A stretch of DNA of 64,000 bases from the sequence record ON529851.1; one strand, 5' to 3'. Positions 5,897-26,290 of the stretch are shown in pieces. Within the stretch, counting starts at the first letter, position 1. Each line of letters starts with the position of its first letter. Both the position numbers and the translations under genes were made by a program. Under the pieces are notes generated by a model, which was not told the DNA's origin, made no database searches, and saw only the letters and a program-made list of their open reading frames with translations.

Positions 5897-6056
5897 CGTC
5901 GAATCGAAACGGCGTCAGGTCAAGTCGGCCGGCGTCAAATCGAAATGGCGTCAAGTCAAGTTTGATCGTGTCAAATCGAAATGGCGTCAAGTCAAGTTCG
6001 CCCGCGTCAAATCGAAACGGCGTCAGGTCAAGTTCGCCCGCGTCAAGTTTGATCCG
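5897..6056. repeat. 4 x 36-bp tandem repeat, two CGTCAA-type motifs per unit
   Basis: Units at 5897, 5933, 5969, 6005 (cgtcaaatcgaaayggcgtcargtcaagt...) plus partial at 6041. Confidence 0.95.
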
Positions 6057-6080
6057 CCAGGACCTGAGCGAAAACGAAGA

Positions 6081-6109
6081 CGCCCGGCGCGCATGAAAGC
6101 GGCCGGGCG
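6081..6109 (-). terminator. Intrinsic terminator
   Basis: CGCCCGGC...GCCGGGCG stem below the 22-aa peptide ORF. Confidence 0.6.
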
Positions 6110-6124
6110 TCAGGGGTCATCCGT

Positions 6125-6193
6125 TCAGAAACAGAGACCCACAATCATGAGGGCGAAAACGATCTTGGACGCGGAACAGAGTTTATCGAGCAT
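6125..6193 (-). CDS. 22-aa hydrophobic peptide MLDKLCSASKIVFALMIVGLCF
   Basis: AGAAGGAAG upstream, terminator downstream, paralog at 23546-23614. Confidence 0.65.
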   Translation of the reverse strand: MLDKLCSASKIVFALMIVGLCF

Positions 6194-6217
6194 ATTCAGG
6201 GGCTTCCTTCTACTAAG

Positions 6218-6361
6218 GAGTCACGCCCGGTAGTAAACGTGACAGGTCGTGGGAACGCTACAGGGAGAAAACTCGCGAGTCATCGTTCGGGGCTAACGTG
6301 ACTGAACTATTTGTTAATCCGGGGCCGGGTCTGGAGTCACGCTGGGTGGGAAACGTGACTC
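6218..6361. repeat. Three 28-bp dyads AGTCACG-N12-CGTGAC
   Basis: Dyads start at 6218, 6277, 6334. Confidence 0.9.
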
Positions 6362-6374
6362 CGGGGTTTCGGTT

Positions 6375-7358
6375 TCAGGCCTCGGCTTGGCGGACGACCG
6401 TGGCGGCGGTCGTGCGGCTGGCGAACTGCTCGCTCGCGATGTCCCCCTTCAGCCCCTCAAAGGCCATGATGCTCGCCCTCAGGTCCGGGGTGATGTAGTC
6501 GGTCCCCTCAGCGGTCGCGTCCGCCTGAAACAGGTCCAGCAGGCGCGCCCGCACCCCGGCGGCGTCGTCCGCATAGAGGATCGGCGCGCCCTCCTGCTCG
6601 GGCTCGATCCGATACGGGCGCCGCTCGCACTCGATCTCGAACGGCCCTTGCCAGTTGCGGACCTCGACCGGCGCCAGGGCGGCGTCGGACAGTTCGTCAA
6701 AGACGCCGTTCTCACGGTCGCCGCATTCCTCGACCTCGGCCTGAGACACGAAGAACTCATGGCGGGCGTCGTCCGCCGCGATAGCGTGGTCCATGATCCA
6801 CGCCTGACCTTGGAAGGTCGCGCGATAGGGCAGGGTTTCGGGCGCCGGCAGGGCGGACGCCGGGGGGTCGCGGTCCATCCAGAAGCGGTAGAGGGCCGCC
6901 CAGGCGCGCGCCCGCTGGCGGTCGCCGGTCGCGGGCAGATAGGCGTCGTGCAGGGCCTCGGCGGCGGCGGCCCGGTCCGGGCCGTCCGGATCGGCCTGAT
7001 CCGCCTCATGGGCGTCGAAGGTCAGCAGGACGGCTTGCGTATGGCGGGCGGTCCATTCACCGGCCGGACCCGCCGCCAGAACCTCGCGCACCTCGGGGAG
7101 GGTCAGGTGGGAAAACTGGGCAGGGTCCCCGGCGATCAATTCCGCAGGGTCCCCGGCCTTGGATTCGGCAGGGTCCCCGGTGATGAATTGGGCAGGGTCC
7201 CCGGCGATGGATTCGGCAGGGTCCCCCCGCTCGATTCCGTCCGCGATGACATAGAGCCGACCGATGAGGCCTTGGGCGGCTTCCGGCGTGGGGTTGTGGC
7301 GCAGCGCCAGCACTTGGGCGGCGGCGGCGCGGATCAGGGCGGGATAGGTGGTGCTCAT
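6375..7358 (-). CDS. Hypothetical protein with 5 x GDPA 8-aa repeat
   Basis: ORF track; GGAG RBS; repeat encoded by a 24-bp GGGTCCC array. Confidence 0.8.
   Translation of the reverse strand: MSTTYPALIRAAAAQVLALRHNPTPEAAQGLIGRLYVIADGIERGDPAESIAGDPAQFITGDPAESKAGDPAELIAGDPAQFSHLTLPEVREVLAAGPAGEWTARHTQAVLLTFDAHEADQADPDGPDRAAAAEALHDAYLPATGDRQRARAWAALYRFWMDRDPPASALPAPETLPYRATFQGQAWIMDHAIAADDARHEFFVSQAEVEECGDRENGVFDELSDAALAPVEVRNWQGPFEIECERRPYRIEPEQEGAPILYADDAAGVRARLLDLFQADATAEGTDYITPDLRASIMAFEGLKGDIASEQFASRTTAATVVRQAEA
7123..7225. repeat. 5 x GGGTCCC at 24-bp period inside a CDS
   Basis: 7123, 7147, 7171, 7195, 7219. Confidence 0.95.
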
Positions 7359-7496
7359 AAAGGGCTCCTCTTGGAGGGAGATGATCAGAGGTCCTGTCTA
7401 CCGGGAAGAAGTTAACATCCGGTTAACGGGGCGCATTCAGCGGCGGCGGCGCGTTTACCCGGCGTTAAGGTTAACGGCGGACGGGCGACCCGAAAG

Positions 7497-7530
7497 CGCC
7501 CGCCGGGGGAGACAACCCGGCGGGCGCGGT
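7497..7530 (-). terminator. Terminator hairpin with GTTGTCTCCC loop (also 15116-15145, 18645-18678)
   Basis: GCCGGG/CCCGGC stem, same loop in three places. Confidence 0.7.
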
Positions 7531-7550
7531 CCTGACGGGGAGACAGTCCG

Positions 7551-8033
7551 TCAGGAGATCGGGGTCAGTTCGTCCTCGAAGGCGTCGTATTCGGCGCCGT
7601 CGTCGGTGCGGACCCGATACATCGGGCCGACCTCCGCGTCGGCTTCGTCCTCAGCCAGCACGCGCAGAACCTCAGCCGGTGTGTCCGGGGCGGTGATGGC
7701 GTCCGAGCAGGTCGAGGTGAACAGGACTTGGGCGCCGGGCTCGAACGCAGGGGCCTGGGGCTCGGCGCCGTCTTCGTCGTCGTTAGACGCCTGGAACTCC
7801 GCCGACGACCCGTCGATCTGGGTGCCGGGCCAGGACACGCCAGGATCGGCCAGCATCCGCAGACAGCCGCTGATGTCGGGCTGGGCGCGGGTGCCGATAT
7901 AGTCGCTGTAGGCATCGGGGACGCCGACCGGGGTTCCGGGGTTCTCGGCGTGGTAGCGTTGCAGGGCCGCGTCGAACAGTTGGCGGGGGTCGGTCACGTC
8001 GAGGGTGATGGTGATCTGATAGGCGTCGCGCAT
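7551..8033 (-). CDS. Acidic hypothetical early protein
   Basis: ORF track; RBS, promoter, terminator. Confidence 0.8.
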   Translation of the reverse strand: MRDAYQITITLDVTDPRQLFDAALQRYHAENPGTPVGVPDAYSDYIGTRAQPDISGCLRMLADPGVSWPGTQIDGSSAEFQASNDDEDGAEPQAPAFEPGAQVLFTSTCSDAITAPDTPAEVLRVLAEDEADAEVGPMYRVRTDDGAEYDAFEDELTPIS

Positions 8034-8102
8034 GGGGCTCTCCCGGCTGGGGTGTTGATGACCTGACCCTACAGGTCAGGTCTTAACAAACGGTTAACAG
8101 GA

Positions 8103-8855
8103 TCAGGATTTGACCGGGGCGATGAGGCTGAACAGTTCGTTGTAGTCGTCGCCCTCGGGCGCCTTCTCCTCGGCGTTCAGCTTGTCGTCATAGGCCTTCG
8201 CCGCCGCGACGGTGCGGTCGTAGGCGTCCGCCTTGGCCTTCATGTCCGAGGCGTCCGTGCCGCCCGTCGCGGCGATCAGGGCGTGGCGCGCGGCTTCGGG
8301 CAGGGCGTCCCAGGCCTGATCATCCAGATCAAAGGCGCCCATGGCGCGGCTGGCGTCGTCGCGCTCGGCCTCGTCCAGTTCAGCCACGCGGGCTTGCAGC
8401 CGGGCGCGCTGTTCGGCGTCGGCCAGATTGGCGACGATGAAGCGCAGGTCCACCGGCTTGATCCCGTTGCCGCGCAGGAAGGCGACGACACGATCCCAGT
8501 CCGCGACCTCGGCCAAGGCGTCGCGCGGTTGCAGATCGTCCAGGCGGGCGGCGTGGTTGTCGCTGGCCTCGGACAGCATGGCGACCAGGGCCGGCGCCGT
8601 GGCGTCGTCCAGCAGGGCGGTGGAGCGGGCCAGGACCTTGCAGTGGGCTTGGTCGATGTCCCAGTCGATGGTTGAGGTCAGGGTCAGTTCCGACATGGCG
8701 GTCCAACCGTCTTGCAGGTCGGTGTCTTGCGCGAGCAGGGCGCGGGCGGCGACGACGGCCTCCTGCCCGCTCGCGGCCTCGACCGCGACGACCTTGAAGG
8801 CGTTGAGGGTGGCGTAGGCGGTGATGTGGAAGCTGTGCAGGGCGGGGCTGGACAT
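8103..8855 (-). CDS. Hypothetical early protein
   Basis: ORF track; RBS and promoter. Confidence 0.8.
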   Translation of the reverse strand: MSSPALHSFHITAYATLNAFKVVAVEAASGQEAVVAARALLAQDTDLQDGWTAMSELTLTSTIDWDIDQAHCKVLARSTALLDDATAPALVAMLSEASDNHAARLDDLQPRDALAEVADWDRVVAFLRGNGIKPVDLRFIVANLADAEQRARLQARVAELDEAERDDASRAMGAFDLDDQAWDALPEAARHALIAATGGTDASDMKAKADAYDRTVAAAKAYDDKLNAEEKAPEGDDYNELFSLIAPVKS

Positions 8856-9014
8856 GGTGTCTCCTGTCGTTGCGTTGAGGCTGTTCTAGCAGCCATTCCT
8901 TAACAAGAAGTTAACGCCAGTCAATTCTTTTCAGGCGGCGGGGCGACCGCCAGGCCCGTTAACCTTAACGCGAGCGGGTCGCAGAACGCCCGGCCAAAGC
9001 CGGGCGCCTTTGAC

Positions 9015-9758
9015 CTAGACCGGAGGCAGGTTGTTGAGATTGACGGTCGGCGGGGCGCCGTCTTTGCCGGTCTTGGCGGCTTGGAGGATCGACTCCATCA
9101 GGGTCTTGGTCGCCGTGCCTTCGCGCAATCTTTCAGCGGCGGAAGAGGCGTTGATGTTCTCGGCGTTGGCTCCCGGCGACGACAGGATGGCTTGGAGGCA
9201 AGCCCGCATCGCACCTTTAGCGGCGAGGTCGGCTTGCGTCGCCGCGTCGTGCAGGGCGGCGGCGTAATCCCCCTGCCCTTCGTCCGCCATCTGCATAAGA
9301 CGGGCGCCCTCTTGCAGCATCCGCACCGCTTCGTGGGCGGTGATGGCGATGGCGTTGGGCAGTTCGTCGGCCTCTTTGGCGTAGAGCGTCAGCAGCCGCG
9401 ACGCCTCTTCGGCGTCGCCGTTATAGACGGCGCCGGCGTCAGACCAATTGCTCGCCAGCACCGCCAAAGCGGCCTGAGCGGCGTAGTGGGCCAGGGTGGA
9501 GCCGCTTTCGAGGTTTTCAAGCTGCTGCGCCAGCCGCAGGGTCAGCGGGTCGGTGCTCTGGGCCAGCGCCAGGGTCAGGAACTCGGGCTGGACTTGGAAC
9601 TCCGTGACTGAGCCGTCGTCGGCGTCCGCCGACAGGCCTTCGGCGTCCCTGTAGTGCTGAATGGCGAACTCCAGCGAGCGACGGACATGGTCGGGGCTCA
9701 CAGCGCCGCCTTCGATCTGCAAGCTGACGATGTAGTTGATGGTGACGGGTGCGGTCAT
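9015..9758 (-). CDS. Hypothetical early protein
   Basis: ORF track; RBS, promoter, terminator. Confidence 0.8.
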   Translation of the reverse strand: MTAPVTINYIVSLQIEGGAVSPDHVRRSLEFAIQHYRDAEGLSADADDGSVTEFQVQPEFLTLALAQSTDPLTLRLAQQLENLESGSTLAHYAAQAALAVLASNWSDAGAVYNGDAEEASRLLTLYAKEADELPNAIAITAHEAVRMLQEGARLMQMADEGQGDYAAALHDAATQADLAAKGAMRACLQAILSSPGANAENINASSAAERLREGTATKTLMESILQAAKTGKDGAPPTVNLNNLPPV

Positions 9759-9892
9759 CGGTGTCTCCTGATGTGGCGTTGATCCTGTTCTAGCACCGAT
9801 TCGTTAACAACAAGTTAACGGCGTGAGGAGATTTCGGCGTTAACCTTAACGCGACGGGGTCGCAAAACGCCCGGCCGAAGCCGGGCGCTGCG

Positions 9893-10666
9893 TCAGGCGG
9901 GGACGCGGGAGAAGTCGGGGCTGTCGCCGTCCGCGACCGTCAGTTCGATCCACGACATACGCTCCATGTGGCGTTTGACGGACCCCTCCGACGACAGGCC
10001 GTTGAGGATATAGGACAGGGCGAGAATCTTGCCCGCCTCGCTGGCTCGGGCGCTGATCTGGGTGCAGTAGGACGAATCCTCCACGAACTCCCAGACGTCG
10101 TTGATCCGGCGCTCGACGGCGACCCGCATCAGGGGCTCGTCGCCGCTGTCGGTCGGGTCATAGTCGCCCGACGCGCCCTCGCCCTCGAAGTCCAGAATCA
10201 CCGCCACGTCGTCGCGTTCCAGGCGCAGCGATGGGAAACGGATCACGTCCGGCTCCGGGGGCGCATCCGGCAGAAGGTCGGCGGCGGCGACCGCCCAGTC
10301 TTCCAGCAGGGTCGAAGCCTCGACCATGGACGCCCCGGCTTGGCGCGCGTCGGTCAGGGCCTGAATATGGACGATGGCGGTTTCCAGCGCCGCCTCCATC
10401 CGAACGACATCGGCGCGTTGGGCGTAGGCCTCGGCGGCGGCGATCAGGCGTGGCTTGAGCGCGGCGACCTGGGCCTCGTTCAGGGGAAGGCTGTCGCTTT
10501 CGTCGCCGTCGATCAGTTGCAGGTAGGAGCCATCGCCGGGGGCGTCGGCGAAAGAGAACAGGACGGCGATGTCAGAGTCGCCGGACTCGTCGGTGGGCGA
10601 GTTCCAGATGTCACAGCGGAAATCGAGGTGGCCGTCATTCTGTGTCATAAAGATCGGGGCGGACAT
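9893..10666 (-). CDS. Acidic hypothetical early protein
   Basis: ORF track; RBS, promoter, terminator. Confidence 0.8.
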   Translation of the reverse strand: MSAPIFMTQNDGHLDFRCDIWNSPTDESGDSDIAVLFSFADAPGDGSYLQLIDGDESDSLPLNEAQVAALKPRLIAAAEAYAQRADVVRMEAALETAIVHIQALTDARQAGASMVEASTLLEDWAVAAADLLPDAPPEPDVIRFPSLRLERDDVAVILDFEGEGASGDYDPTDSGDEPLMRVAVERRINDVWEFVEDSSYCTQISARASEAGKILALSYILNGLSSEGSVKRHMERMSWIELTVADGDSPDFSRVPA

Positions 10667-10804
10667 GGGCGTCTCCTGTCATTGCGTTGATCCTGTTCTA
10701 GCACCGATTCGTTAACAAGAGGTTAACGCCGCGCTGCGAAACACTCGCGTTAACCTTAACGGCCGGCGCCCAGAAAACGCCCCGACCGAAGCCGGGGCGC
10801 GGGG

Positions 10805-11122
10805 TCAGCAGACGGTGTTCGCGCCGACCGTTTCGGAGACGTGGGTGGGCTCTTCGTCATCGTCGGCCTCGGCGGCGACCTCGGACGCCATGTCGTCATA
10901 GGTCGCGCCCATGTCTTCGGTCCAGCCCTCCAGGGCGTTGACGGCGCCGGCAAGGTCGCCGCTCGCCCAGTTGTCCACCACGCCTTGCGCCAGCAACACG
11001 CCCTCGGCGGCGTCCTGATAGAGGCTCAGCAGCAGGGCCGTGGACAGGGTGACGGTCTTCTCGCCCGCCGCCATGGCGGCGTCGAGGACGGAGTCGATGG
11101 TCGGTTCAGCGGCGTCGGTCAT
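10805..11122 (-). CDS. Acidic hypothetical early protein
   Basis: ORF track; RBS, promoter, terminator. Confidence 0.8.
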   Translation of the reverse strand: MTDAAEPTIDSVLDAAMAAGEKTVTLSTALLLSLYQDAAEGVLLAQGVVDNWASGDLAGAVNALEGWTEDMGATYDDMASEVAAEADDDEEPTHVSETVGANTVC

Positions 11123-11177
11123 GGGTGTCTCCCGGTGGTTGATGGTGTGACCCTACAGGCCAGAGGTTAACAACTCG

Positions 11178-11582
11178 TTAATTGGCTTTGACTTCTTCGC
11201 CGTCCAGATAGACCAGCGAACCCATCATGCCAAAGACAGGGTTGCGGTCGCCGCGATCCTTTTCGGCGGCCTCGAACCGTTCGAGAATGGCGGGCTGGCG
11301 CGCGAACCGGATATTGCGGAAATACGGCGTCTGCTTCTTGTCCATCCCGTCGAAGGCGAACCACTCGCGTTCGTGCGTTCCGCCGCCGAACCACGTCCGC
11401 TTGCGGCGAATGTAGATGGCCCGCTCGCCGTTGCCGGCCAGCAGCCACACAGACCGACCCGGCAGGGCCAGCGACAGGTCGCGCAGGGCGTCGCGCATCA
11501 TTTGATCCGACAAGGCGAACAGGCGGATTTCCGCCGCCTCGACCGTTTCGAGGGCGACGACGAAGGGATCGCGGCGGCTCAT
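11178..11582 (-). CDS. Hypothetical protein
   Basis: Coupled (ATGA) to upstream gene. Confidence 0.75.
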   Translation of the reverse strand: MSRRDPFVVALETVEAAEIRLFALSDQMMRDALRDLSLALPGRSVWLLAGNGERAIYIRRKRTWFGGGTHEREWFAFDGMDKKQTPYFRNIRFARQPAILERFEAAEKDRGDRNPVFGMMGSLVYLDGEEVKAN

Positions 11583-11878
11583 GCGGCGACGGGGACGCAG
11601 CGCGTCCCTTCCGGCAGGAGGTCGAGCGCGGCTTGGGTGAAATGGAAGCGGATTGGCCCCTCATAGTCGCCGCGCGCGATGGCGTCGGCGGCGGCGGTTC
11701 CCCAGCCCGTGGAAATCGAGCCCTTGGGCGTGACATCAACCCAGTTGGGGGCGTCATAGAGAATCCTGATCCGCAGGGTGTTTTCGGTGTGGCGGATCAG
11801 AAAATACTCGGTCCCGTCCGGGCCGACGATCTTGTGCGTCGGCTTGGACAGCTTGGCGCTCGGGGGCAGGAAGGCCAT
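11579..11878 (-). CDS. Hypothetical protein
   Basis: RBS and promoter. Confidence 0.8.
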   Translation of the reverse strand: MAFLPPSAKLSKPTHKIVGPDGTEYFLIRHTENTLRIRILYDAPNWVDVTPKGSISTGWGTAAADAIARGDYEGPIRFHFTQAALDLLPEGTRCVPVAA

Positions 11879-12019
11879 GAGGTGTCTCCTTTGTTCCTGA
11901 TCGTTCTAGCAGGGATTCGTTAACAAGAGGTTAACGCGCAGCGAAAAACGCGCCGGGCCGGCGTTAACCTTAACGCGAGCGGGTCGCAGAAAGGCCGGGG
12001 CGAACCCCGGCCTTGCGCG

Positions 12020-12715
12020 TCACTCTTTGGCGTGGCCCGCGTCGATCTTCACCGCCAGTTCGTCCATCCGGTCGGCCTTGTGGCGCAGCCAGTCGGCGGC
12101 GCGCTCGATGACCTCGACCATCGGCAGACGGTGCACCAGACCGGACGGGAACGACCCCGACAGGTTGTCCAGCAGCGTGATCGGCGGGACGTGACCGCAG
12201 GCGATATAGGCCGCTGCAAGGTGGTCGGTCAGGTTCATGCCGCCGCCGGTCAGGGCGATTTCATAGTCCGGTTCGTCGTGGCGCCCGTTGTCGATCTCAA
12301 TCAGGGTGCAGGCCAGACCCCAGGCGTCGAAGCGCGCGGCGATGGCGGCGATGCCTTCCGAGTCGACGTATTTCAGATCGACCGGCCAGCCGTAATTCAT
12401 CATGGGGTCGAAGCTGTCGCGCCACTCGTCGTATCCCTCCGTCTGGCGGAAGGCGTCTTCCAGTTCTTCGTCGGCCAGCACGGCGGCGCCGTCCACCTCG
12501 AACAGGGCGCGCGCCTTGGGGAAGTCGTCCCACAGGTCCGCCGCCCGCTCGTCGATCACGCCCAACGTGATCGCGGGCAGGACCGATTGGAAGCCGGGTT
12601 CGCCGGTGTCGGCGTTATAGAACTCCGACCAGTCGCGCTCCATCGAGTCGTTGGTGATCGAGGCCAGCGAGAAGGCGGCGTCGGCGGCGATGGGGCGGGG
12701 GAAGGGGTTCGACAT
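12020..12715 (-). CDS. Phage hypothetical protein
   Basis: RBS; PMMNYGWP / IALTGGGMNL motifs. Confidence 0.8.
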   Translation of the reverse strand: MSNPFPRPIAADAAFSLASITNDSMERDWSEFYNADTGEPGFQSVLPAITLGVIDERAADLWDDFPKARALFEVDGAAVLADEELEDAFRQTEGYDEWRDSFDPMMNYGWPVDLKYVDSEGIAAIAARFDAWGLACTLIEIDNGRHDEPDYEIALTGGGMNLTDHLAAAYIACGHVPPITLLDNLSGSFPSGLVHRLPMVEVIERAADWLRHKADRMDELAVKIDAGHAKE

Positions 12716-12892
12716 GGGGTCTCCTGATCCAGCATAGGGGTCTGATGCTGTTGAACATAGACACCATGTCTTAACAAAAGGTTAAAATCAAGCGGCATTA
12801 GAACCCTATGCTGGAAGAAAGTGGTTAATCCCGCGTTAAGGTTAACGACCGCCGCCGGGCAAAAGAAAACCCGGCCGAAGCCGGGTCTCTCG

Positions 12893-13603: not shown

Positions 13604-13664
13604 GACGGGTGTCTCCCGGTGAATGTCGATGGGCTGACCCTAGCGGCCAGAGGTTAACAAGAGG

Positions 13665-19246: not shown

Positions 19247-19659
19247 GCCTCGACCTCCTCTTCGACTTCGGCATAGGCGCTGGGGATGCGCTTGTTCGTG
19301 TGATCGCAGAACAGATCGGGGTCCTCATAGTTGATCTGGACGCTGTCGAGGCGCCAGCCGGTCGAGGCGTCGTGCAGGTGGTCGTCACAGACCAGCGTGA
19401 AGTTCGCCTGCACCGCGTCGAACGACAGGGCGACGCCGTCGCGGGTGGCGAAATAGAGCGGATAGCCGCCGAGGTCCGTGTAAGGCCCGGCGCGCAGCGC
19501 GGCCTTGACCTGCTGAAGCGCCTTGACCGGATCGGCGTCGAAGCGGGCGGCCGATCCCTTATAGGCGGCGCGCAGCGGCTTGGCGGTTCCCCAGCCGGGC
19601 TGGCGGGTGTCGTAGAGGGCGCCATCGGACGAGGCGAAAAGGTGGGCGGGCAATGTCAT
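19243..19659 (-). CDS. Phage hypothetical protein (GGYPLYF...INYED..L.CDH)
   Basis: RBS, promoter, recalled phage motif. Confidence 0.8.
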   Translation of the reverse strand: MTLPAHLFASSDGALYDTRQPGWGTAKPLRAAYKGSAARFDADPVKALQQVKAALRAGPYTDLGGYPLYFATRDGVALSFDAVQANFTLVCDDHLHDASTGWRLDSVQINYEDPDLFCDHTNKRIPSAYAEVEEEVEA

Positions 19660-19828
19660 GGGGTCTCCTCCCGTTGCTGACCCTCCCTGTATCGCATGAA
19701 GTTCTTAACAACAAGTTAACGCCGCGTTTTATTTCCGGCGGCGGACGGCGGGCGTTAACCTTAACGCGCTGTTAAGGTTAATGCGAGCGGGTCGCGGAAG
19801 GGGCGCCCGGCCGAAGCCGGGCGCCGGT

Positions 19829-19969
19829 TCAGGCGGCGGTGCGGTAGCGGGTGTGGCCCCGGTCCCAGGTGTAGGCCTCGACCGATCCGCTCGGGTGGGG
19901 GTTGTTCCACCACTTGACGCCCCGGCGCGCGGCGGCGTAGCCCGCGCCTTCGATCTGGGCGGCGTCCAT
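19829..19969 (-). CDS. Rmf-like 46-aa protein
   Basis: MDAAQIEGAGYAAARRGVKWWNNPHPSGSVEAYTWDRGHTRYRTAA resembles the Rmf G.Y.A...G...(N/C)PY......W..G pattern. Confidence 0.5.
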   Translation of the reverse strand: MDAAQIEGAGYAAARRGVKWWNNPHPSGSVEAYTWDRGHTRYRTAA

Positions 19970-20214
19970 CAGGCGCCGATCCGGTGGGCCGGGCAGAAGC
20001 CCGACACGACCTTGACGCGACCACGCTTGAAACCGGGGCGCAGGGCGCGCGCCGAGCGTTCGGCGTCGGCGGTCTTCATGTGACCGCAGGCGCAGGACGC
20101 GCCGGGGTCGCGGGTCTGGGCCTCGCGCACCTTGTCGGCGCCGGCCTGTGTGCCGAGCCAGCCGCAGAAGGGCTCGCCGCCGACCGTGATGTGAGCGGGT
20201 TGGGTGTTAATCAT
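19969..20214 (-). CDS. Hypothetical protein
   Basis: Coupled ORF. Confidence 0.7.
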   Translation of the reverse strand: MINTQPAHITVGGEPFCGWLGTQAGADKVREAQTRDPGASCACGHMKTADAERSARALRPGFKRGRVKVVSGFCPAHRIGA

Positions 20215-20743
20215 CGTCGCCGTCCTCCTCGTCCTGGGGCATATCCTCGGCGTCGGTCAGGCCGGTGACGGTCCACCAGCCGAGGCCTTGAGCGTCACCC
20301 GACGTGTAGCCTTCGCGGACCATCGTCGCCATCGCTTCCAGCGCGTCGGCCACGTCCTCGTCGGTCATGGCGTCGTGACCGTTGAAGGTGAAGGTCGGCT
20401 TGACCGTCACCGGGGCGGGGGTCGATTCGCTGTTGATCTCTTCATGATGCGTCACGCTCTCGGCGACGATCTCAGCGAGGTCGTCGCCGACCAGCATCCA
20501 GTCTTCGGCGTCGCCGTCCGGGTCATAGACGACGAAGGCGCCGGGGTATTGCGCGACGCGGGCGCGCCAGCCGTTGCGCACCTCGGCGTGTTTCTCGCCG
20601 ATCCAGTCGGCGCCCATATGGGTTGCGCCCTCGTAGGCTCTGACCGGGAAATTGGTCGTCATCAGTTCGCTGCGGGTGGCGACGCGCAGGCCCCACACGT
20701 CGAGGGCGGTCTGGGCTTGCGTCAGGGTCATGGCGTCGGGCAT
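20207..20743 (-). CDS. Hypothetical protein
   Basis: Start MPDAMTL after AAGGAGG. Confidence 0.8.
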   Translation of the reverse strand: MPDAMTLTQAQTALDVWGLRVATRSELMTTNFPVRAYEGATHMGADWIGEKHAEVRNGWRARVAQYPGAFVVYDPDGDAEDWMLVGDDLAEIVAESVTHHEEINSESTPAPVTVKPTFTFNGHDAMTDEDVADALEAMATMVREGYTSGDAQGLGWWTVTGLTDAEDMPQDEEDGDDD

Positions 20744-20753
20744 CGGGGCCTCC

Positions 20754-20951
20754 TTAGAGATGGATCGCGGCGTCGAACGCCTGGGATTGCAGTTTCTTGG
20801 CGGCTTCGGCCTCGGCGGGGTAGAGCCGGGCCAGGCCGTCAAAGCGTTCTTTCTGATGCGAGCGCTCGCCCTCGGCGGCGGTCATGTGCATGACCTCGCC
20901 CCACAGGTGGGCCATTTCGAGGATCAGGACAGAGCGGCGGGAAGCGTTCAT
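20754..20951 (-). CDS. Hypothetical protein
   Basis: RBS and promoter. Confidence 0.75.
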   Translation of the reverse strand: MNASRRSVLILEMAHLWGEVMHMTAAEGERSHQKERFDGLARLYPAEAEAAKKLQSQAFDAAIHL

Positions 20952-21003
20952 GGCGGTCTCCTTGTTGACCTCGCCACCCTAGCAGCGAGGTCTTAACAAG
21001 AGG

Positions 21004-21249
21004 TTAACAGCGGCGGAGCATTTCACGCATCAGGGCTTCCTCGTTGCGGGCGATGTCCAGCGCGGCGCGGTCGTGGCCTTGCTCATGCGCCTGCTTGGCC
21101 TGCTGTCGGCAGATGTCCTGGCGCTTGCGGATGTCAGCCTCCGACAGGGTGCGGAACAGGGCGTCGGCCTCCTGATCGACCTTGACGGTCCAGTGCTGCT
21201 GCGATTCGTCGTCGGCGCGGAGATGGGCGGGGAAGTAGGCGTCGGCCAT
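21004..21249 (-). CDS. Hypothetical coiled-coil protein
   Basis: AGGAGG RBS. Confidence 0.75.
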   Translation of the reverse strand: MADAYFPAHLRADDESQQHWTVKVDQEADALFRTLSEADIRKRQDICRQQAKQAHEQGHDRAALDIARNEEALMREMLRRC

Positions 21250-21257
21250 GGGTCCTC

Positions 21258-21569
21258 CTAAAGGTTCTGGTCGCGGACGCGGGCGAGCGCGGTGTGGACG
21301 GCGGGGAGCAGGGTCGGCGTCTGGCCGCTCATCCAGAACTCGGTCGCGTCGCCCTCGCCCATCTGATGCGAGACGCCGTAGAAGCAGGCGCCGCGCGGGG
21401 TGTCGTCATTGGGGCATTGGACCCAGACCGGCAGGTCTTGGCCGTCGCGGGTGAGGACCAGCGCGTCATCCGTGCTGCCGTCGTCGGCGACCTCATAGCG
21501 GGCCGACAGGCCGGCAGCGGTCAGCAGGGTCATGGCGGCGGTCCAGGGGGCGCCTTGGGGAAGGGGCAT
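21258..21569 (-). CDS. Hypothetical protein
   Basis: RBS and promoter. Confidence 0.75.
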   Translation of the reverse strand: MPLPQGAPWTAAMTLLTAAGLSARYEVADDGSTDDALVLTRDGQDLPVWVQCPNDDTPRGACFYGVSHQMGEGDATEFWMSGQTPTLLPAVHTALARVRDQNL

Positions 21570-21704
21570 TGCGATCTCCTTTGTGCTGACCCTGTTCTAG
21601 CAATGATTCGTTAACAAGAGGTTAACGTCCTGCGCGGTGGTCCGGGGCGTTAACCTTAACAGGGTCAGGCCGGAAAACGCCCCGGCCGAAGCCGGGGCGC
21701 AGGG

Positions 21705-22595
21705 TCAGCCGACCCGCTCCTTCTTGAGGTGGTAGGACCGACCGTGGGTCATCAGGGAGCGGAACCCGCCCAACCGGGTCTCGCCCGGCGCCGGGGTCAC
21801 GACATAGACCGGATCGAGGAAGTCGTCGTTCCAGCGGATCACGTCGTCGAACGCCTGCGGCGTGTGCAGCACGACCTTATAGGGTTCGCCTTCGGGCGCG
21901 ACCAGATCGGTGGTGTGGTCCTCGTCGCCCTTGTAGCCGAACACCGACAGGACCGCGACCGGCAAGCCGTCGTCGAGCGTCGAGAGGTCTTGCAGGGCGC
22001 GGGCCTCGGCCAGCCGCTTGTGCGGCTCATAGAGGGCGCAGTCGCGCTTGAGCAGGTCAGCGCGCAAGGCGACGACACGCTGGGGCGTCAGGTCCAGAGA
22101 CGCGCAGGCCCCGATGACGACGCCGTAGATGAAGCCGAGTTCGTGCTGCGTGAGCGACACCATGCCGTCCATTCCCGCCGTCGCGACCTCCTGATTTTTC
22201 AGGCCGAACGCCGCCAGGGCGCCGGCGACGTCGCGGCACTCCTGCCGGGTCGGGGCGGTCTTGGCCTCGATGTGGAGGCGCAGGGTGTCGCGGGCCTTCA
22301 TCAGGTCCACAATCGCCAGCGACAGGCCGGTGTAGCGTCCATCTTCGACCGGGGCGGGCTTGGGCTTCGGGGCCGGGTAGGTCTCGACGCACAGCAGGCG
22401 GGCGCGGGTCTCCTCGACCGTATAGACCTCGACCTGATAGGCCATGCCGAGCGCCACGCGCAGTTCGTTGCGGATCGCCAGACCGGCCTCGGGGTCGGTG
22501 GTGGTCAGGCGCAGTTCGCCGATCCGGCGGTCCTCGCCCTGGGCGGGATGGCGGCGCGACAGTTCGAGGCGCAGGTCGTAGGGGGCGTCGGTCAT
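21705..22595 (-). CDS. Hypothetical early protein
   Basis: RBS, promoter, terminator. Confidence 0.8.
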   Translation of the reverse strand: MTDAPYDLRLELSRRHPAQGEDRRIGELRLTTTDPEAGLAIRNELRVALGMAYQVEVYTVEETRARLLCVETYPAPKPKPAPVEDGRYTGLSLAIVDLMKARDTLRLHIEAKTAPTRQECRDVAGALAAFGLKNQEVATAGMDGMVSLTQHELGFIYGVVIGACASLDLTPQRVVALRADLLKRDCALYEPHKRLAEARALQDLSTLDDGLPVAVLSVFGYKGDEDHTTDLVAPEGEPYKVVLHTPQAFDDVIRWNDDFLDPVYVVTPAPGETRLGGFRSLMTHGRSYHLKKERVG

Positions 22596-22648
22596 CAGGG
22601 TCTCCCGTGGTTGAGCGTCCGGTATAGCCGGAAGGTCTTAACAAACCG

Positions 22649-23020
22649 TTAACGGCGGTCTTCGCTGAGGCGGGCGAGTATTTCGTCGTTCGTCATCGTG
22701 TCCAGCAGGTCTTGCACCTGACGGGCCTTTTCGTCCTCGACCGCCTGAGCCGCCGCCTTGGCGCGGCGATGCTCGGCCAGCGCCGCCTTGCCCGCTTCGG
22801 TCGTCTCCGGGTCGATGGTCATGTAAAGGCTGACCTCGCGGCCCTGCCGATCCACGAAGGTCAGGCTTCCAGACGGACGCACCTTGACGGTGAACATCGC
22901 CTTGACCAGCCGCTCGGCGGTCTCTTGACCGAAGTCGCCGCCGAAGCTGCCGCCCGCCGCCTTGAGGGTGTTGTCGCTCTTGAGGCGGGTGTGATAGCCG
23001 ATGTTCTTGTAGGTGTGCAT
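22649..23020 (-). CDS. Hypothetical protein
   Basis: Start MHTYKNIG after AAGGAG. Confidence 0.8.
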   Translation of the reverse strand: MHTYKNIGYHTRLKSDNTLKAAGGSFGGDFGQETAERLVKAMFTVKVRPSGSLTFVDRQGREVSLYMTIDPETTEAGKAALAEHRRAKAAAQAVEDEKARQVQDLLDTMTNDEILARLSEDRR

Positions 23021-23030
23021 GGGGCGCTCC

Positions 23031-23369
23031 TTAGAAGGGAATGTCGTCGTCGAACGCGGGCGTCGTGACATAGGTCTGGGCGGGGCGGGCGCGGCGGGCG
23101 GCGTCCATCTCGGCGCGCTCCTCGTCCGTCGCGCTCCAATACTCGTCGTCTTCCGGGTGCGCGCCGGGCTCGCCGCGATAGTGCGGGTTCTTCACCCAAG
23201 CGTCGAACGGGTGCAGCAGCCACTCCACGTCAGGCGCCTCGAAGCCTTCCGACTGAGCGAACCCCGACAGGGCCAGGCTCATGTATTCGCCCTGGCTCAG
23301 CGACTCCATCGCCAGAGCGTCTTCCTTTTCGCGGCGGGCCTCTTCGGCCATTTCGATCACATCGCGCAT
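23031..23369 (-). CDS. Small acidic protein ending in SSB-like tail DDDIPF
   Basis: C-terminus PAFDDDIPF; W..NPHY.G.PG.HPE motif; no OB fold evident. Confidence 0.8.
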   Translation of the reverse strand: MRDVIEMAEEARREKEDALAMESLSQGEYMSLALSGFAQSEGFEAPDVEWLLHPFDAWVKNPHYRGEPGAHPEDDEYWSATDEERAEMDAARRARPAQTYVTTPAFDDDIPF

Positions 23370-23545
23370 CGGCGTCTCTCCTTGTGAGCCCCCTTTATGC
23401 CAGACAGAAGTTAACAACAAGTTAACGCCGACGCTTTTCTGCATTTTTCTTCAGGCGGCGGCTGCGGGCGTTAACCTTAACAGCCTGTTAAGGTTAACGG
23501 GCGGGCGGGGCCTGGGAAACGGCGTCCCGTAACGGGACGCCTCTC

Positions 23546-23614
23546 CTAGAAGGTGAGCATGATGACCAGCAGGGCCAGAAAGAGGCGGGAGGCGCCGGCC
23601 AGCTTGTCGATCAA
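23546..23614 (-). CDS. 22-aa hydrophobic peptide MIDKLAGASRLFLALLVIMLTF
   Basis: TTG overlaps upstream TGA; paralog of 6125-6193; hairpin follows. Confidence 0.6.
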   Translation of the reverse strand: MIDKLAGASRLFLALLVIMLTF

Positions 23615-24081
23615 GACTCGCTGTCCGCTTTCATCGCCGCGCACAGGGTTTCGACCAGCCGCTTGTGACGCGCCAGAGCGGCGGGGTCGGCGCGCTCGCC
23701 TTGGAAGGGGACCAGCACCAGAGGTGTGGCCGAGGGGTCCAGCGCCCAGAAGATTTCCGTCTCGCCGTCCGTCATCTGGTAGGTATAGACGTTCAGGTCG
23801 GCGGGGGCGTGGTCGAGGAAATAGACGCGCCCGTTGAACTTGACGTCGAAGGGCTGATCCGGCGTCGCCAAGTCGATCTCGGCCAGCACGGCGTCGCGCA
23901 CGGCGTCAATCGGGTGAACGCCGTCTTCGCCGATTTCATCAGGACGGGATTCGGCCTCGGCCTCCGCGTCGCGCTTGATGTCCTCGACCACGGCGGCGCG
24001 CGCCTCCTCCCAAGTCGCACAGGCGCTGGGCTCCTCGTCGGGCATGAAGCCCGAGACATTCGATCCGGTCACATAAGGCAT
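23611..24081 (-). CDS. Acidic hypothetical protein
   Basis: Start MPYVTGS after AAGGAGA. Confidence 0.8.
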   Translation of the reverse strand: MPYVTGSNVSGFMPDEEPSACATWEEARAAVVEDIKRDAEAEAESRPDEIGEDGVHPIDAVRDAVLAEIDLATPDQPFDVKFNGRVYFLDHAPADLNVYTYQMTDGETEIFWALDPSATPLVLVPFQGERADPAALARHKRLVETLCAAMKADSES

Positions 24082-24233
24082 CGGGGTCTCCTTGTTGGTT
24101 CCGATGGTGCAGACTACCCGACAAGGTCTTAACAAAAAGTTAACAGCGGCGCAATCGCTTTTCTTCGCGACGTTAACCTCTTGTTAACTTCCGTGTGGGA
24201 TAAGGGACAGGTCAACAACACAGGAGATCGCCG

Positions 24234-24479
24234 ATGGGCGAAGTCATCCCGCACCGCGTCTGGCGCAACACCCGGACCGAACGCACCGCTGGCGTGTTCG
24301 GCGCCGTGCCTTGGGTCTCGGACGCGGAGAAGTCCGACTGGGAACTGGTCACGGTCGGCTGGACCGTTCGCCACCCGGACGGCACGACCGGGGTCGGTCG
24401 CTTCGCCTTCGAGACGAAGGACGAGGCGCAGGCTTGGGTCGATGAGAATCCCAACTTCCCCGGCATGAGCCAAGGCTAG
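24234..24479 (+). CDS. Hypothetical protein, only + strand gene of the early zone
   Basis: AGGAGA RBS, inverted CtrA box 24173-24187, terminator about 24485-24515. Confidence 0.8.
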   Translation: MGEVIPHRVWRNTRTERTAGVFGAVPWVSDAEKSDWELVTVGWTVRHPDGTTGVGRFAFETKDEAQAWVDENPNFPGMSQG

Positions 24480-24533
24480 TCACAAGGGCGTCGGTCGCAA
24501 GGCCGGCGCCCTTCGCCGCTGCGACCGGCTCGC

Positions 24534-24893
24534 GTTAACCTTAACAGGGCGTTAACCTTAACAACCCTGCCCGCTCTAGGGGTATGACCGGGTAGGGCCA
24601 GGTATGACCGGGTCATACCGGGGCGGATTCCCGCTGAAAATCACCCAAATTCGCCGAATTTCGCCCAAAATCGCCGGATTTTGACCTTAAATCACTGTTT
24701 TTACTCGATTTTTCAGGTTTTCAGGCGGTTCAGCGGCCGTTAACCTTAACAGGGCGTTAACCTTAACGCTGGAATGGTTAACGGGGCGTTAACCTTAACG
24801 CGGGGATGGTTAACGCGGTGTTAACCTTAACGCCCGGATGGTTAACGGGCCGTTTACCTTAACGCCGGGAGGGTTAACGCCCCCAGGGTTAAT
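24534..24893. promoter_or_regulatory. Dense gene-less cluster of TTAA boxes; GGTATGACC-G-GGTCATACC palindrome at 24601-24619
   Basis: Chained GTTAACCTTAAC and TTAA-N7-TTAA units. Confidence 0.75.
24631..24727. repeat. Phased A/T-tract segment, inverted relative of 25802-25893
   Basis: A/T tracts about every 10 bp; reverse complement aligns by eye with 25802-25893. Confidence 0.7.
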
Positions 24894-24901
24894 CCGGGGC
24901 G

Positions 24902-25137
24902 CGTCAAATCGGGCGCGCGTCAAATTCGGCCGGCGTCAAATCGAAACGGCGTCAAGTCAGGTCGGGCGCGTTGAAGCGCGCTCGCGTCAAATCCAGATCG
25001 CGTCAAATTCGCGGGGCGTCAAATCGCGCTCCCGTCAAATCGGCCGCGCGTCAAATTCGCAGGGCGTCAAATCGGCCGCGCGTCAAATCGGCGGGGCGTC
25101 AAGTCGACCAGGCGGCGTTGAAGCGCGCCGACGTCAA
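24902..25137. repeat. 13 x CGTCAA, mostly at 16-bp period
   Basis: 24902, 24918, 24934, 24950, 24985, 25001, 25017, 25033, 25049, 25065, 25081, 25097, 25132. Confidence 0.95.
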
Positions 25138-25340
25138 GTCGGGCTGCCAGGGCGCGCCCGAGCGGGCTTGCGCGGCGCTCCGCCTTCCAGGGAGGACGAC
25201 CCGGAAGAAACGGCCTGAAACGCGCCCTGACGCGTCTTTGTAGCCCAGGCAGGGGCGCGGTCAAGCCGAGCGGGGCCGGGAAGGCCGTTTTCCGGGCCGT
25301 GGAGCGCCCTGGCGCGGGCGCGGCGGCCGCAGGGTCGCCG

Positions 25341-25789
25341 GAGTCACGAAATCCATCCACGGGCCGGAAAACCAGGCCCTGCGGGCGATCGTCAGTCACG
25401 ATACCTATGAAGCGTGACTCTGCTTGGATTTTTGTCAGTCACGAAACCCGGAGGCGGGCTCCGCCGGCGATCCTGGCGCCCAGGCGGGTCAGCGTCAGCG
25501 GTTGTGTCAATGCAGGACACAATAAGGCGCGATTGCGGCGAAACAGGATTTCAGACCGGAGTCACGTTTGCCGGAATCGAGGCTTGGGGCTTTTGTTGAT
25601 TTCATTGAGGTTTTTCTGGAAATCGCCGCGAAACGGAGTCACGAAGTCCGTTGTGCAGTGCAGCAATGCGCCGGATTTGAGCGGGTCCAGGCGGGGCGAA
25701 ACAGAGTCACGTTTCCCTAAGCCCATGAGATCGTTTAGCTTTTCAGGCGGGGTCGGCACCTGAGTCACGTTAGACACCAACGATGACTC
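25341..25789. repeat. AGTCACG cluster including N12 dyads at 25393 and 25762
   Basis: Half sites at 25341, 25393, 25413(rev), 25436, 25559, 25636, 25704, 25762, 25782(rev, degenerate). Confidence 0.9.
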
Positions 25790-25868
25790 CGGCAACAGAG
25801 GCCCGAAAACAGGCAAAATCGCTGTAAAATCAGGTATTTAGGGGTATTTTCGGGGATTTTAGGCGAAT

Positions 25869-26051
25869 TCAGCGCCGTTTTCGGTGAAATCGGGCCACAG
25901 ACTGGCTGGGAAGGTCTTGCCGCCCCGCTGAACGCCCGGCACGCTGCCGATGTCGCCGCTTCCGCTCCCACGGCGTGGGGTGGATGATCTGGACCGCCCA
26001 GAAGAGCAGCAGAAGGAAGACCAGGCCGCCCATCACGATCGCTATCGCCAT
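25869..26051 (-). CDS. Small membrane protein with basic tail
   Basis: MAIAIVMGGLVFLLLLFWAVQ...; AGGAGAG RBS. Confidence 0.6.
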   Translation of the reverse strand: MAIAIVMGGLVFLLLLFWAVQIIHPTPWERKRRHRQRAGRSAGRQDLPSQSVARFHRKRR

Positions 26052-26084
26052 TTCGCGCTCTCCTGCCCCCTGGGGAAACACCCA

Positions 26085-26290
26085 GGGTCCCTGACGGAAA
26101 AATTCGGATGGGTCCCCGGTCAGGAATTCGCCAGGGTCCCTGGACGAAGAATTCCGAAGGGTCCCCGGCGGGAAAATTCGCCAGGGTCCCTCGACCAGAA
26201 AATCCCGATGGGTCCCCGCCCGGATTATCGCCAGGGTCCCTGGGCGAAGAATTCCGAAGGGTCCCCGGCCCGAAAATCCGGAAGGGTCCC
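26085..26290. repeat. 9 x GGGTCCC at 24-26-bp period with AATT/AAAAT spacers
   Basis: 26085, 26110, 26134, 26159, 26184, 26210, 26234, 26259, 26284. Confidence 0.95.

Follow-up and report, generated by a model that had tools for sequence, protein, structure and literature searches.

Phages of the phiCbK group carry long direct terminal repeats (DTRs), which were mapped by coverage and end ligation to 10.3 kb in phiCbK and about 17 kb in Colossus; the intein-containing large terminase subunits (TerL) of these two phages form a class that packages long DTRs, and the way phiCbK packages its DNA has been likened to T5 and SPO1 packaging (Gill et al. 2012, PMC3556154). The annotated DTRs of Bertelyviruses span 22-30 kb. 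The study of Mascolo et al. 2022 (PMC9437464), on phages of Alphaproteobacteria that depend on pili or flagella and have CtrA-rich DTRs and gap regions, describes a concentration of CtrA sites in the DTRs of this phage group; in the passages searched, GGGACCC, AGTCACG and TTGACG families and the Marchewka group were not found.

The stretch analysed here (the window) comprises 64 kb of Brevundimonas phage vB_BpoS-Marchewka, a 348-kb phiCbK-like phage, and corresponds to bases 62001-126000 of ON529851 with 100% identity to the record, which is labelled 'circular' and has no annotated repeat_region. Marchewka resembles the DTR-bearing phiCbK-like phages (phiCbK, Colossus, CcrPW and Bertelyviruses) in its TerL class, with terS-terL immediately upstream. 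Its TerL shares ~55% identity with those of phiCbK and Colossus, both of which contain an intein, and the insertion within it aligns to these annotated inteins. Also shared are an array block inside the terL-proximal end, an element at the far end, and a repeat filled with small genes bearing CtrA-box promoters. The ends of the relatives' repeats are mapped or annotated, whereas those of Marchewka are predicted from sequence, and its repeat would measure ~39 kb as compared with 10-30 kb. The block is single in phiCbK, Colossus and BL47, but Marchewka repeats it internally, once fully and once partly, and, unlike in these relatives, one of its GGGACCC arrays has been absorbed into coding sequence. 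The explanation we favor, with moderate confidence, is that window 1-26.6 kb belongs to a ~39-kb zone of small early genes representing the collapsed Marchewka DTR, with the terL-proximal (right) locus at its end, the left locus inside it, and the arrays serving as protein-binding sites.

Three site families at two loci

Motif totals in the window were compared with those in shuffled sequence (100 shuffles for CGTCAA), and tandem arrays were scored with TRF. A preliminary description had reported three motif families at two loci, and a motif scan found all three at both, on the plus strand and in the same order and orientation (Table 1). CGTCAA occurs 59 times, against 34 ± 5.8 in the shuffles, none of which (0/100) reaches 59; the left locus has five exact copies (5933-6046; TRF array 5896-6046, period 36 × 4.2) and the right locus 13 (24902-25137; TRF array 24891-25106, period 16 × 13.3). 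Four copies of AGTCACG at 6219-6360 and eight at 25342-25769 account for 12 of the 14 matches in the window; the two clusters are present as described, although their positions had been given one base too low (6218 and 25341). For GGGTCCC, the total of 22 is not above chance (21), yet 14 of these fall in two arrays, one of five copies at 7123-7225 (period exactly 24; TRF score 160) and one of nine copies at 26085-26290 (period 24-26; TRF scores 239-295). Contrary to the preliminary description, the two loci are not a unique pair: genome 54,450-55,791 (window -7.55 to -6.2 kb) holds a third, partial set, in which a CGTCAAG array and a GGGTCCC array keep this order with ~1.2 kb between them.

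Table 1. Features of the Marchewka window (window coordinates)
Feature	Position	Strand	Basis or remark
CtrA-box-rich early-gene zone, terL-proximal two thirds	1..26650	-	CtrA-site scan, gene homology; zone runs on to window -12,356
Array B3: TTGACG units in 36-bp compound repeat × 4.2	5896..6046	-
Small hydrophobic ORF, 22 aa	6125..6193	-	hairpin at ~6080-6110 follows
Cluster B2: palindromic putative operators GGAGTCACG-N12-CGTGAC(T) at 6219 and 6335	6219..6360	n/a	more degenerate third pair at ~6297
CDS MARCHEWKA_01340, 327 aa, host of array B1	6375..7358	-
Array B1: 5 GGGACCCT units, period exactly 24, in frame in CDS	7119..7226	-	encodes GDPxxxxx repeats
Tandem CtrA-box cassette, period 32 × 4.2	24746..24879	-	AT-rich stretch 24640-24720 adjacent
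Array A3: at least 13 TTTGACGC units (plus strand CGTCAA), period 16	24891..25137	-
Cluster A2: 8 AGTCACG/CGTGACT sites, most AAACGTGACTC on minus strand	25342..25769	-
Small unannotated ORF, 60 aa, hydrophobic N-terminus and basic tail	25869..26051	-	directly after array A1
Array A1: 9 GGGACCCT units, period 24-26, two alternating unit types	26082..26290	-	non-coding
CtrA-type boxes (GTTAACCTTAAC and similar), between terL and array	26330..26425	-	read directly
terL, large terminase subunit with intein-like insertion	26651..29374	-	GenBank annotation
terS, small terminase subunit	29615..30307	-	annotation; PHROG phrog_11494, E = 6e-64; weak Pfam Terminase_2 match

The left locus (window 5.9-7.2 kb) is a second, most likely internal edition of the three site families and is limited to giant Brevundimonas phages (the Marchewka group and Gurke). 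All five B1 units use rare codons (GGG GAC CCT; GGG makes up 14.7% of Gly and CCT 5.6% of Pro codons), which indicates a constraint on this coding array at the DNA level. The host gene, MARCHEWKA_01340, has no Pfam or PHROG match; it has orthologues in Gurke and Kabachok and a weak match inside the BL47 DTR. Gurke and Kabachok each retain array B1 with 6 units (period 24 in Gurke) and also retain array B3, whose compound unit occurs once within Marchewka array A3 as well. In Gurke, with a TerL ~72% identical to that of Marchewka, the left locus is preserved with all three families, 20.8 kb from the right locus of that phage, and includes three B2-type palindromes at the syntenic place and a 24-aa ORF positioned like the 22-aa ORF of Marchewka.

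Repeat ends in relatives and in Marchewka

The right locus extends over window 24.7-26.4 kb and corresponds to a block just inside the left DTR end of relatives. Since terL lies on the minus strand at 26651-29374, with a gap of 360 bp, the locus adjoins the terL 3' end, as had been described. On the minus strand, its layout runs from CtrA boxes through the GGGACCCT array, a putative membrane-type small ORF, CGTGACT sites and the TTTGACGC array to CtrA cassettes. An array block downstream of terL with the same order and orientation is found in phiCbK (785-2110), Colossus (100-1790) and CcrPW, and BL47 has GGGACCC and TTGACG clusters in the order of this block. CtrA-type boxes occupy the equivalent position in phiCbK (785-850) and Colossus (107-180), and arrays homologous to A1 lie at 853-990 in phiCbK, 355-481 in Colossus, 418-545 in CcrPW and 1119-1211 in BL47. 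The place of the 60-aa ORF, which had no family match in Pfam or PHROG, is taken in phiCbK by gp001, a small hydrophobic protein. Cluster A2, in which the site at 25394 forms a palindrome around a 12-bp spacer, has its counterpart in GTGACT sites at the equivalent position in Colossus and CcrPW. TTGACG arrays stand in place of A3 in phiCbK (1777-1900), CcrPW (~1455-1565) and BL47 (1991-2207), and Colossus has just two exact TTGACG copies there (1415 and 1497). The conservation of these parts supports the right locus as a non-coding block that is found throughout the subfamily a short way inside the DTR end next to terL.

Between the block and the left DTR end, as mapped or annotated, there are 0.35-1.1 kb in phiCbK, Colossus, CcrPW and BL47. 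Relatives whose ends are mapped or annotated have a single copy of the block in each DTR, at the left end, and no arrays were found at their right ends. The expected recurrence of the motifs at known termini is thus borne out on the left and not on the right, where a different, single element is found. The right ends of phiCbK (10,287, ligation-mapped), CcrPW (18,404), BL47 (30,174) and CcrSC (23,946), of which the last three are annotated and, if assigned by homology to phiCbK, would not be independent, differ by no more than one column when aligned and follow an invariant AGGGACCCA at a distance of 44-46 nt. That the CcrPW ends differ from the Colossus annotation argues for independent data. 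The AGGGACCCA right-end element is also present in Colossus, Marchewka and Gurke; the published coverage drop of Colossus (16,589-16,764) precedes it by 430-600 bp, and near the annotated end of CcrBL9 (22,260) no such element was found. In Marchewka, the element lies at genome 49,644 (window -12,356), 19.6 kb beyond the left locus, and its BLAST match to CcrPW ends exactly at the CcrPW DTR end. The extended form of the element was not found at the left locus.

The same stretch of the genome stands out in its CtrA-type sites. All 70 TTAA-N7-TTAA sites in genome 1-176,000 fall within 49,644-88,650, together with 133 of the 138 GTTAAC sites; such a concentration in intergenic regions, with 70 of 70 sites in 39 of the 176 kb scanned, is akin to that of the CtrA-rich DTRs and gap regions mentioned above. 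The interval between the two loci, which had been said to enclose most CtrA cassettes, contains only 33 of the 70. Homologues of zone genes, from both sides of the left locus, are found within the DTRs of relatives (Colossus, phiCbK and BL47), and the gene that closes the zone matches the one that closes the BL47 DTR.

Judged by its TerL class and the homology of the right locus, Marchewka very probably has a long DTR, in agreement with the preliminary description. The proposed length of ~19 kb probably does not hold, as the right-end element, the CtrA boxes and the DTR-gene homologues all extend beyond the left locus; ~39 kb is probably closer. Of the two loci read as cutting or duplication sites, the right one, a homologue of the block inside left DTR ends, is supported as an end region, while the left one is most likely internal to the DTR and not its second end. 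By homology to relatives with mapped or annotated ends, we infer a terL-proximal end at or just past the terL 3' end (window ~26.3-27.4 kb) and a far end at the conserved site at genome 49,644, outside the window. The left DTR end lies inside terL in phiCbK and BL47 and after terL in Colossus and CcrPW, and because of this variation between genera that of Marchewka can be placed to ~1 kb at best. The predicted 39 kb exceeds any DTR annotated in the subfamily, but in light of the Bertelyvirus DTRs it is not out of scale.

Alternative explanations and array function

A DTR of ~19 kb bounded by the two loci as cutting or duplication sites, with the element at -12.4 kb as a relic or transcriptional boundary, seems unlikely to us. 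It would account for the recurrence of three families in like order and orientation, a pairing kept in Gurke at 20.8 kb, and 19-21 kb is within the 17-30 kb range of the relatives' DTRs; moreover, the GGGACCC core is also the core of their right-end box, and in Colossus the coverage drop need not match the conserved element. However, the array block is absent from the right ends of relatives in which ends are mapped or annotated, a third, partial set exists in Marchewka, and more than half of the CtrA boxes as well as homologues of DTR genes lie outside the interval, while the left locus lacks the extended right-end element and has its GGGACCC array within a conserved CDS. Even less probable is that Marchewka has no DTR at all and is circularly permuted by headful packaging, its conserved elements being inherited regulatory sequence only. 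The record is circular and its source paper has no terminus analysis, but Marchewka and phages with mapped DTRs have conserved features in common, namely TerL class, terL-proximal block, right-end element and CtrA zone.

A stronger candidate, possible though still doubtful, agrees with the prediction of a 39-kb DTR and departs from the favored explanation on array function only. Here, the arrays would be unrelated to packaging and act as early-region operators, enhancer-like arrays or host-factor decoys beside CtrA-box promoters, with the right locus close to an end merely because the early region begins there. The AGTCACG-N12-CGTGACT palindromes have the geometry of operators and are found again ahead of the capsid gene, each GGGACCC and TTGACG array at all three loci is flanked by CtrA boxes and a downstream gene, the distance between left end and array varies from 0.35 to 1.1 kb between genera, and TTGACGC matches the -35 consensus of Caulobacter housekeeping promoters. 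Yet the invariant AGGGACCCA box keeps a fixed distance of 44-46 nt to right ends and a GGGGACCC unit is found at the annotated left end of CcrPW, which ties at least the GGGACCC core to termini. That the TTGACG arrays, AT-rich stretches and CtrA sites form iteron-type replication origins, or partition sites for an episomal (pseudolysogenic) state, we consider improbable. Thirteen direct repeats with a 16-bp period lie beside stretches whose GC content is 44-50%, against 66% for the genome, and CtrA sites flank the chromosomal origin of Caulobacter. Persistence of Dolichocephalovirinae as episomes has been reported, with an unidentified origin postulated (PMC12195562). Nevertheless, no DnaA boxes were found in either locus, no initiator or partition gene was recognized beside the arrays, where the neighboring ORFs tested had no family match, three origin copies within 39 kb would be unusual, and the replication module of relatives lies elsewhere (PMC3556154).

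Under the favored explanation of a ~39-kb DTR, the arrays look like protein-binding sites and would be bound by sequence-specific proteins. The GGGACCC core is common to the arrays and to a box that lies ~45 nt inward of each right end, mapped or annotated, which suggests that a putative binding protein, possibly TerS, may take part in packaging. The AGTCACG family is not terminus-specific, since its palindromes and half sites are also present in the head-gene region and ahead of the capsid gene; the palindromes may be operators for a dimeric transcription factor with a further role at the capsid gene.

In coliphage T5, the long DTR contains pre-early genes and, near the inner end of its left copy, a non-coding region rich in repeats, the injection stop signal. 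Marchewka would share with it a long DTR in which early genes are accompanied by non-coding sequence with many direct and inverted repeats, but the two phages have unrelated terminases and motifs, the main block of Marchewka is at the outer end, next to terL, instead of the inner one, and phiCbK-like phages are not known to deliver their DNA in two steps. Arrays of TerS-binding sites occur in lambda (the R sites of cosB) and SPP1 (pac boxes) as short repeated boxes by the terminase genes, near the packaging cut. In contrast to these systems, the array-to-cut distance varies from 0.35 to 1.1 kb between phiCbK-like genera, and Marchewka has extra arrays far from any predicted end. The likeness is in short repeated boxes beside the terminase genes and close to a predicted cut, putative sites of 6-9 units with a period of ~25 bp that could wrap a TerS ring.

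Motif arrays near the terminase genes

Brevundimonas phage vB_BpoS-Marchewka belongs to the Dolichocephalovirinae (phiCbK-like phages) and has a genome of 348,421 bp; its record, ON529851.1, is circular and carries no repeat_region, and the window covers bases 62001-126000 of it. From window position 1 to 24,081, every annotated gene is small, lies on the minus strand and is of unknown function. Some 2.5 kb of non-coding DNA (24.1-26.65 kb), holding only two small annotated CDSs, separates this block from terL. In transcriptional order, terS and terL come first, followed by the right locus, some 19 kb of small genes, the left locus and further small genes. TerL, of the intein-containing phiCbK class (~907 aa), is about 55% identical over its full length to the TerLs of phiCbK and Colossus, with terS directly upstream; tblastn with TerL gave full-coverage matches in Dolichocephalovirinae only, and TerS matches phrog_11494. 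TerL contains an insertion of ~340 aa (window ~27,965-28,984, minus strand) that can be aligned with the inteins annotated in the phiCbK and Colossus proteins; its last residues are ...VVVHN, and the next residue is S. Upstream of terS, a relatively AT-rich tandem repeat occupies window 33560-33758 (period 76, 2.6 copies, 82% matches).

As the preliminary description held, CGTCAA, AGTCACG and GGGTCCC form one cluster each at 5.9-7.2 kb (left locus) and at 24.9-26.3 kb (right locus), in identical order and orientation, and Tandem Repeats Finder recovered the arrays independently. Over the entire window, CGTCAA is commoner than expected (59 copies versus 34 ± 5.8); GGGTCCC shows no overall enrichment, with 14 of its 22 copies inside the two arrays, and 12 of the 14 copies of AGTCACG fall in the two clusters. 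A third, partial set lies outside the window, at -7,550 to -6,209 (negative window coordinates being to its left), with the same order and about 1.2 kb between its arrays; no AGTCACG cluster was found between its CGTCAAG and GGGTCCC arrays. The three sets align with one another only within the arrays themselves, and no paralogues were detected among the 72 proteins of the zone, the ~39 kb of small early genes between genome position 49,644 and terL. These are therefore reiterated site arrays, and a recent segmental duplication of the loci was rejected. An Rfam scan of 5.4-26.8 kb gave no match at threshold, Pfam and PHROGs searches with the array-bearing CDS and the small ORFs gave none, and sigma-70 promoter and terminator scans were uninformative. 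CtrA boxes of the GTTAACCTTAAC type are present in each of four tandem 32-bp units at window 24746-24879; since no gene starts directly downstream, this cassette may be a decoy array for CtrA or a distant control region.

Features of the Marchewka genome and of related phages (L007, L018 and L004 are the Marchewka, Gurke and Colossus stretches compared)
Feature	Position	Strand	Remarks
CDS	window 24234-24479	+	sole plus-strand gene of the zone; 81 aa, function unknown
Small CDS	window 25562-25777	-	annotated, within the ~2.5-kb non-coding stretch
terL	window 26651-29374	-	annotation
terS	window 29615-30307	-	annotation
Third set, CGTCAAG array	genome 54,450-54,646 (L007 32450-32646)		period 35, 96% matches
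Third set, GGGTCCC array	genome 55,669-55,791 (L007 33669-33791)		period 25, 95% matches, near-perfect
Zone gene	window 412		matches Colossus gp027, E = 5e-42
Zone gene	window -1680		matches phiCbK gp011, E = 2e-21
Zone gene	window 4904		matches BL47 gp044 and gp046
Last gene before right-end element			matches last gene of BL47 DTR, E = 4e-5
Right-end element, Marchewka	L007 27690->27644 (genome 49,644-49,690; window -12,356)	-	single occurrence, outside the window
Right-end element, Gurke	L018 ~8790->8723		with upstream TGTTTCAAAAYGGGAC
Right-end element, Colossus	L004 17,194-17,240		with upstream TGTTTCAAAAYGGGAC
Right end, phiCbK	10,287		mapped
Right end, CcrPW	18,404		annotated
Right end, BL47	30,174		annotated
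Right end, CcrSC	23,946		annotated

The right locus and the left ends of related terminal repeats

The ends of the direct terminal repeat (DTR) of phiCbK were mapped by coverage and end ligation, the left one to codon 652 of terL and the right one to an intergenic site 10,287 bp downstream (Gill et al., PMC3556154); in Colossus, the left end lies just past terL, and at the right boundary coverage drops diffusely near 16.7 kb (PMC3556154). After terL, phiCbK carries CtrA-type boxes, six GGGACCCT units, a small hydrophobic ORF (gp001), AGTCAC/GTGAC pairs, a TTGACG array and CtrA cassettes. Read on the minus strand, where GGGTCCC, CGTCAA and AGTCACG become GGGACCC, TTGACG and CGTGACT, the block in Marchewka runs from CtrA boxes through a GGGACCC array, a small ORF, GTGACT sites and a TTGACG array to CtrA cassettes. 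Window 26425->24720 (minus strand) matches phiCbK 785-2110, Colossus 100-1790 and CcrPW 160-1850. Colossus and CcrPW have the order of phiCbK, Colossus with TTGACG in just two exact copies at the array position, and BL47 likewise conserves the order of its GGGACCC (1119-1211) and TTGACG (1991-2207) clusters. Each DTR of phiCbK, Colossus, CcrPW and BL47 has a single copy of the block, situated 0.35-1.1 kb inward of the left end. The match and this single occurrence identify the right locus as a homologue of the left-end block, which supports the view that a long DTR has its terL-proximal end region here. The left locus had been taken for the other end of the same repeat, but the array block is absent from the right DTR ends of all relatives compared. 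The observation is confirmed, and its interpretation is half right.

The annotated left end of CcrPW starts exactly at a GGGACCCT-N3-4-AAATT unit. No conserved candidate for the left cut site was found in the aligned terL-to-array spacers of Marchewka, Kabachok and Gurke, and the left-end sequences of phiCbK and Colossus have no obvious motif in common. The break point of the Kabachok record lies 12 nt inside the GGGACCC unit that comes first after terL (L002 end/L003 start; window equivalent 26279/26280), which may reflect a physical end or a mere assembly break in a tandem repeat. The plus-strand CDS of the zone is followed by a perfect palindrome, GGTATGACCGGGTCATACC, at window 24600-24620; phiCbK has a similar palindrome in the equivalent position, at ~2130-2170.

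A conserved right-end element and the predicted extent of the repeat

The right ends of phiCbK, CcrPW, BL47 and CcrSC fall within one alignment column of each other, 44-46 nt past an invariant AGGGACCCA, the phiCbK end being mapped and the other three annotated. A right-end element, TGTTTCAAAAYGGGAC..AGGGACCCAAGGCC..ATTTT..GGGGCGCC, is common to these four phages and to Colossus, Marchewka and Gurke. In a BLAST search with the Marchewka element, the CcrPW match stops exactly at the CcrPW DTR end; the annotated end of CcrBL9 does not coincide with the element. The published coverage drop of Colossus (16,589-16,764) lies 430-600 bp before the conserved element, which coincides with the DTR end in the congener CcrPW, and the Colossus DTR may be ~17.24 kb long instead of ~16.7 kb. 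A 14-mer scan of IMG/VR with the right-end box returned mostly chance matches, plus known phages.

The right-end element is absent from the left locus. The position of the element in Marchewka puts the predicted far end of the DTR after minus-strand ...CGCCGGGGCGCC, at genome position 49,644 and 19.6 kb past the left locus. Motifs were scanned over genome positions 1-176,000 of 348,421: all 70 TTAA-N7-TTAA sites lie within 49,644-88,650, and 133 of 138 copies of GTTAAC between 49,644 and the terL stop at 88,651. Most CtrA cassettes had been placed between the two loci, yet only 33 of the 70 TTAA-N7-TTAA sites are found there. In phiCbK and Colossus, CtrA boxes likewise end at the DTR boundary. 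Mascolo et al. 2022 (PMC9437464) describe CtrA sites as concentrated in the DTRs of this phage group, and the strong positional clustering of the mostly intergenic TTAA-N7-TTAA sites in Marchewka resembles the CtrA-box-rich DTR zone of that account. Zone genes flanking the left locus on both sides have homologues inside mapped or annotated DTRs. The right-end element, CtrA boxes and homologues of DTR genes are all found beyond the left locus, and in place of the ~19-kb DTR originally proposed, one of ~39 kb is predicted, whose far end falls outside the window.

In Bambus, Domovoi, Papperlapapp, Kabachok and Gurke, the corresponding zone is 37.7-39.2 kb long. Bertelyviruses have annotated DTRs of 22-30 kb, and in BL47 the last 5 kb of the DTR (L015 25,300-30,000) consist of six tandem copies of a ~885-bp three-gene unit, so that DTRs of this subfamily evidently grow by tandem duplication and large ones are no exception. 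Head length in relation to genome size does not discriminate between the two repeat lengths: from the tables of PMC3556154 and PMC10070969, a 39-kb DTR gives ~1.05 kb per nm and a 19-kb DTR ~1.00 kb per nm, and the phiCbK group spans both values.

For the seven "circular" Brevundimonas phage genomes, these comparisons predict a DTR of 38-39 kb with the far end at a named base; the GenBank records of these phages probably under-represent the virion chromosome by ~11%. Across three genera, right ends that have been mapped or annotated share one concrete sequence element, and a conserved array block at the left DTR end is now also defined. In the accessible portions of the literature on these phages, we found no description of the cross-genus right-end element and arrays.

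The left locus and possible functions of the arrays

Gurke, whose TerL is only ~72% identical to that of Marchewka, has kept both loci, each with the three motif families in conserved order, 20.8 kb apart. With an exact period of 24, the GGGTCCC array of the left locus is in frame within CDS 6375-7358 and encodes five GDPxxxxx repeats; in Gurke it is likewise in frame in the orthologous CDS. The right GGGTCCC array has periods of 24-26 and cannot code for repeats. All five GDP repeats of Marchewka use GGG GAC CCT, although in neighbouring genes GGG accounts for 14.7% of glycine codons and CCT for 5.6% of proline codons; this indicates that selection acts on GGGGACCCT as a DNA word. The left locus is a real, conserved element, most likely an internal reiteration.

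AGTCACG forms palindromes, GGAGTCACG-N12-CGTGACTCC, at 6219, 6335 and 25394, and the N12 geometry is also found in Gurke and Colossus. A variant, GGAGTCATG-N13-CGTGACTCC, lies just upstream of the major capsid gene (L007 6636-6662; genome ~28,636), and half sites, GGAGTCACG(T/A)TT, occur in the head-gene region at genome 35,468, 37,658 and 47,465. Inverted repeat, fixed spacing and recurrence upstream of genes are all found in this family, which has the features expected of an operator bound by a dimeric transcription factor rather than those of a terminus signal. The evidence for a TerS recognition array is positional, the GGGACCC core being situated near mapped or annotated ends. The GGGACCCT-N3-4-AAATT unit is kept across genera whose TerLs are ~55% identical, and its core is common to the right-end box; the distance from array to left end differs between genera. 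The simplest reader of this unit would be a conserved phage protein, plausibly TerS. That the GGGACCC core is a phiCbK-type terminase code, in which the single box sets the far cut ~45 nt away and the array loads the enzyme at the near end, we consider improbable. Were it so, the ~39-kb DTR of the giant Brevundimonas phages would be longer than any annotated in the relatives examined, and internal arrays could be alternative initiation or termination sites, giving virions that differ in repeat length.

At each of the three loci, the TTTGACGC arrays precede CtrA-box promoters and might act as enhancer-like or decoy sites. Alternatively, they might be iterons of a replication origin: the 16-bp-period TTGACG array, iteron-like in geometry only, adjoins 100-bp windows of 44-50% GC, and Dolichocephalovirinae are reported to persist as episomes with an unidentified origin (PMC12195562). 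Against iterons stand the lack of DnaA boxes (TKATCCACA, at most one mismatch) in 24.1-26.65 kb and 5.5-6.4 kb and the lack of an initiator gene beside the arrays, the neighbouring ORFs tested having no family match. Perfect Caulobacter-type DnaA boxes, TGATCCACA, occur just twice in the window, at 47334-47342 and 59847-59855; with at most one mismatch, the window holds 24 matches, about twice the shuffled expectation of 11.4.
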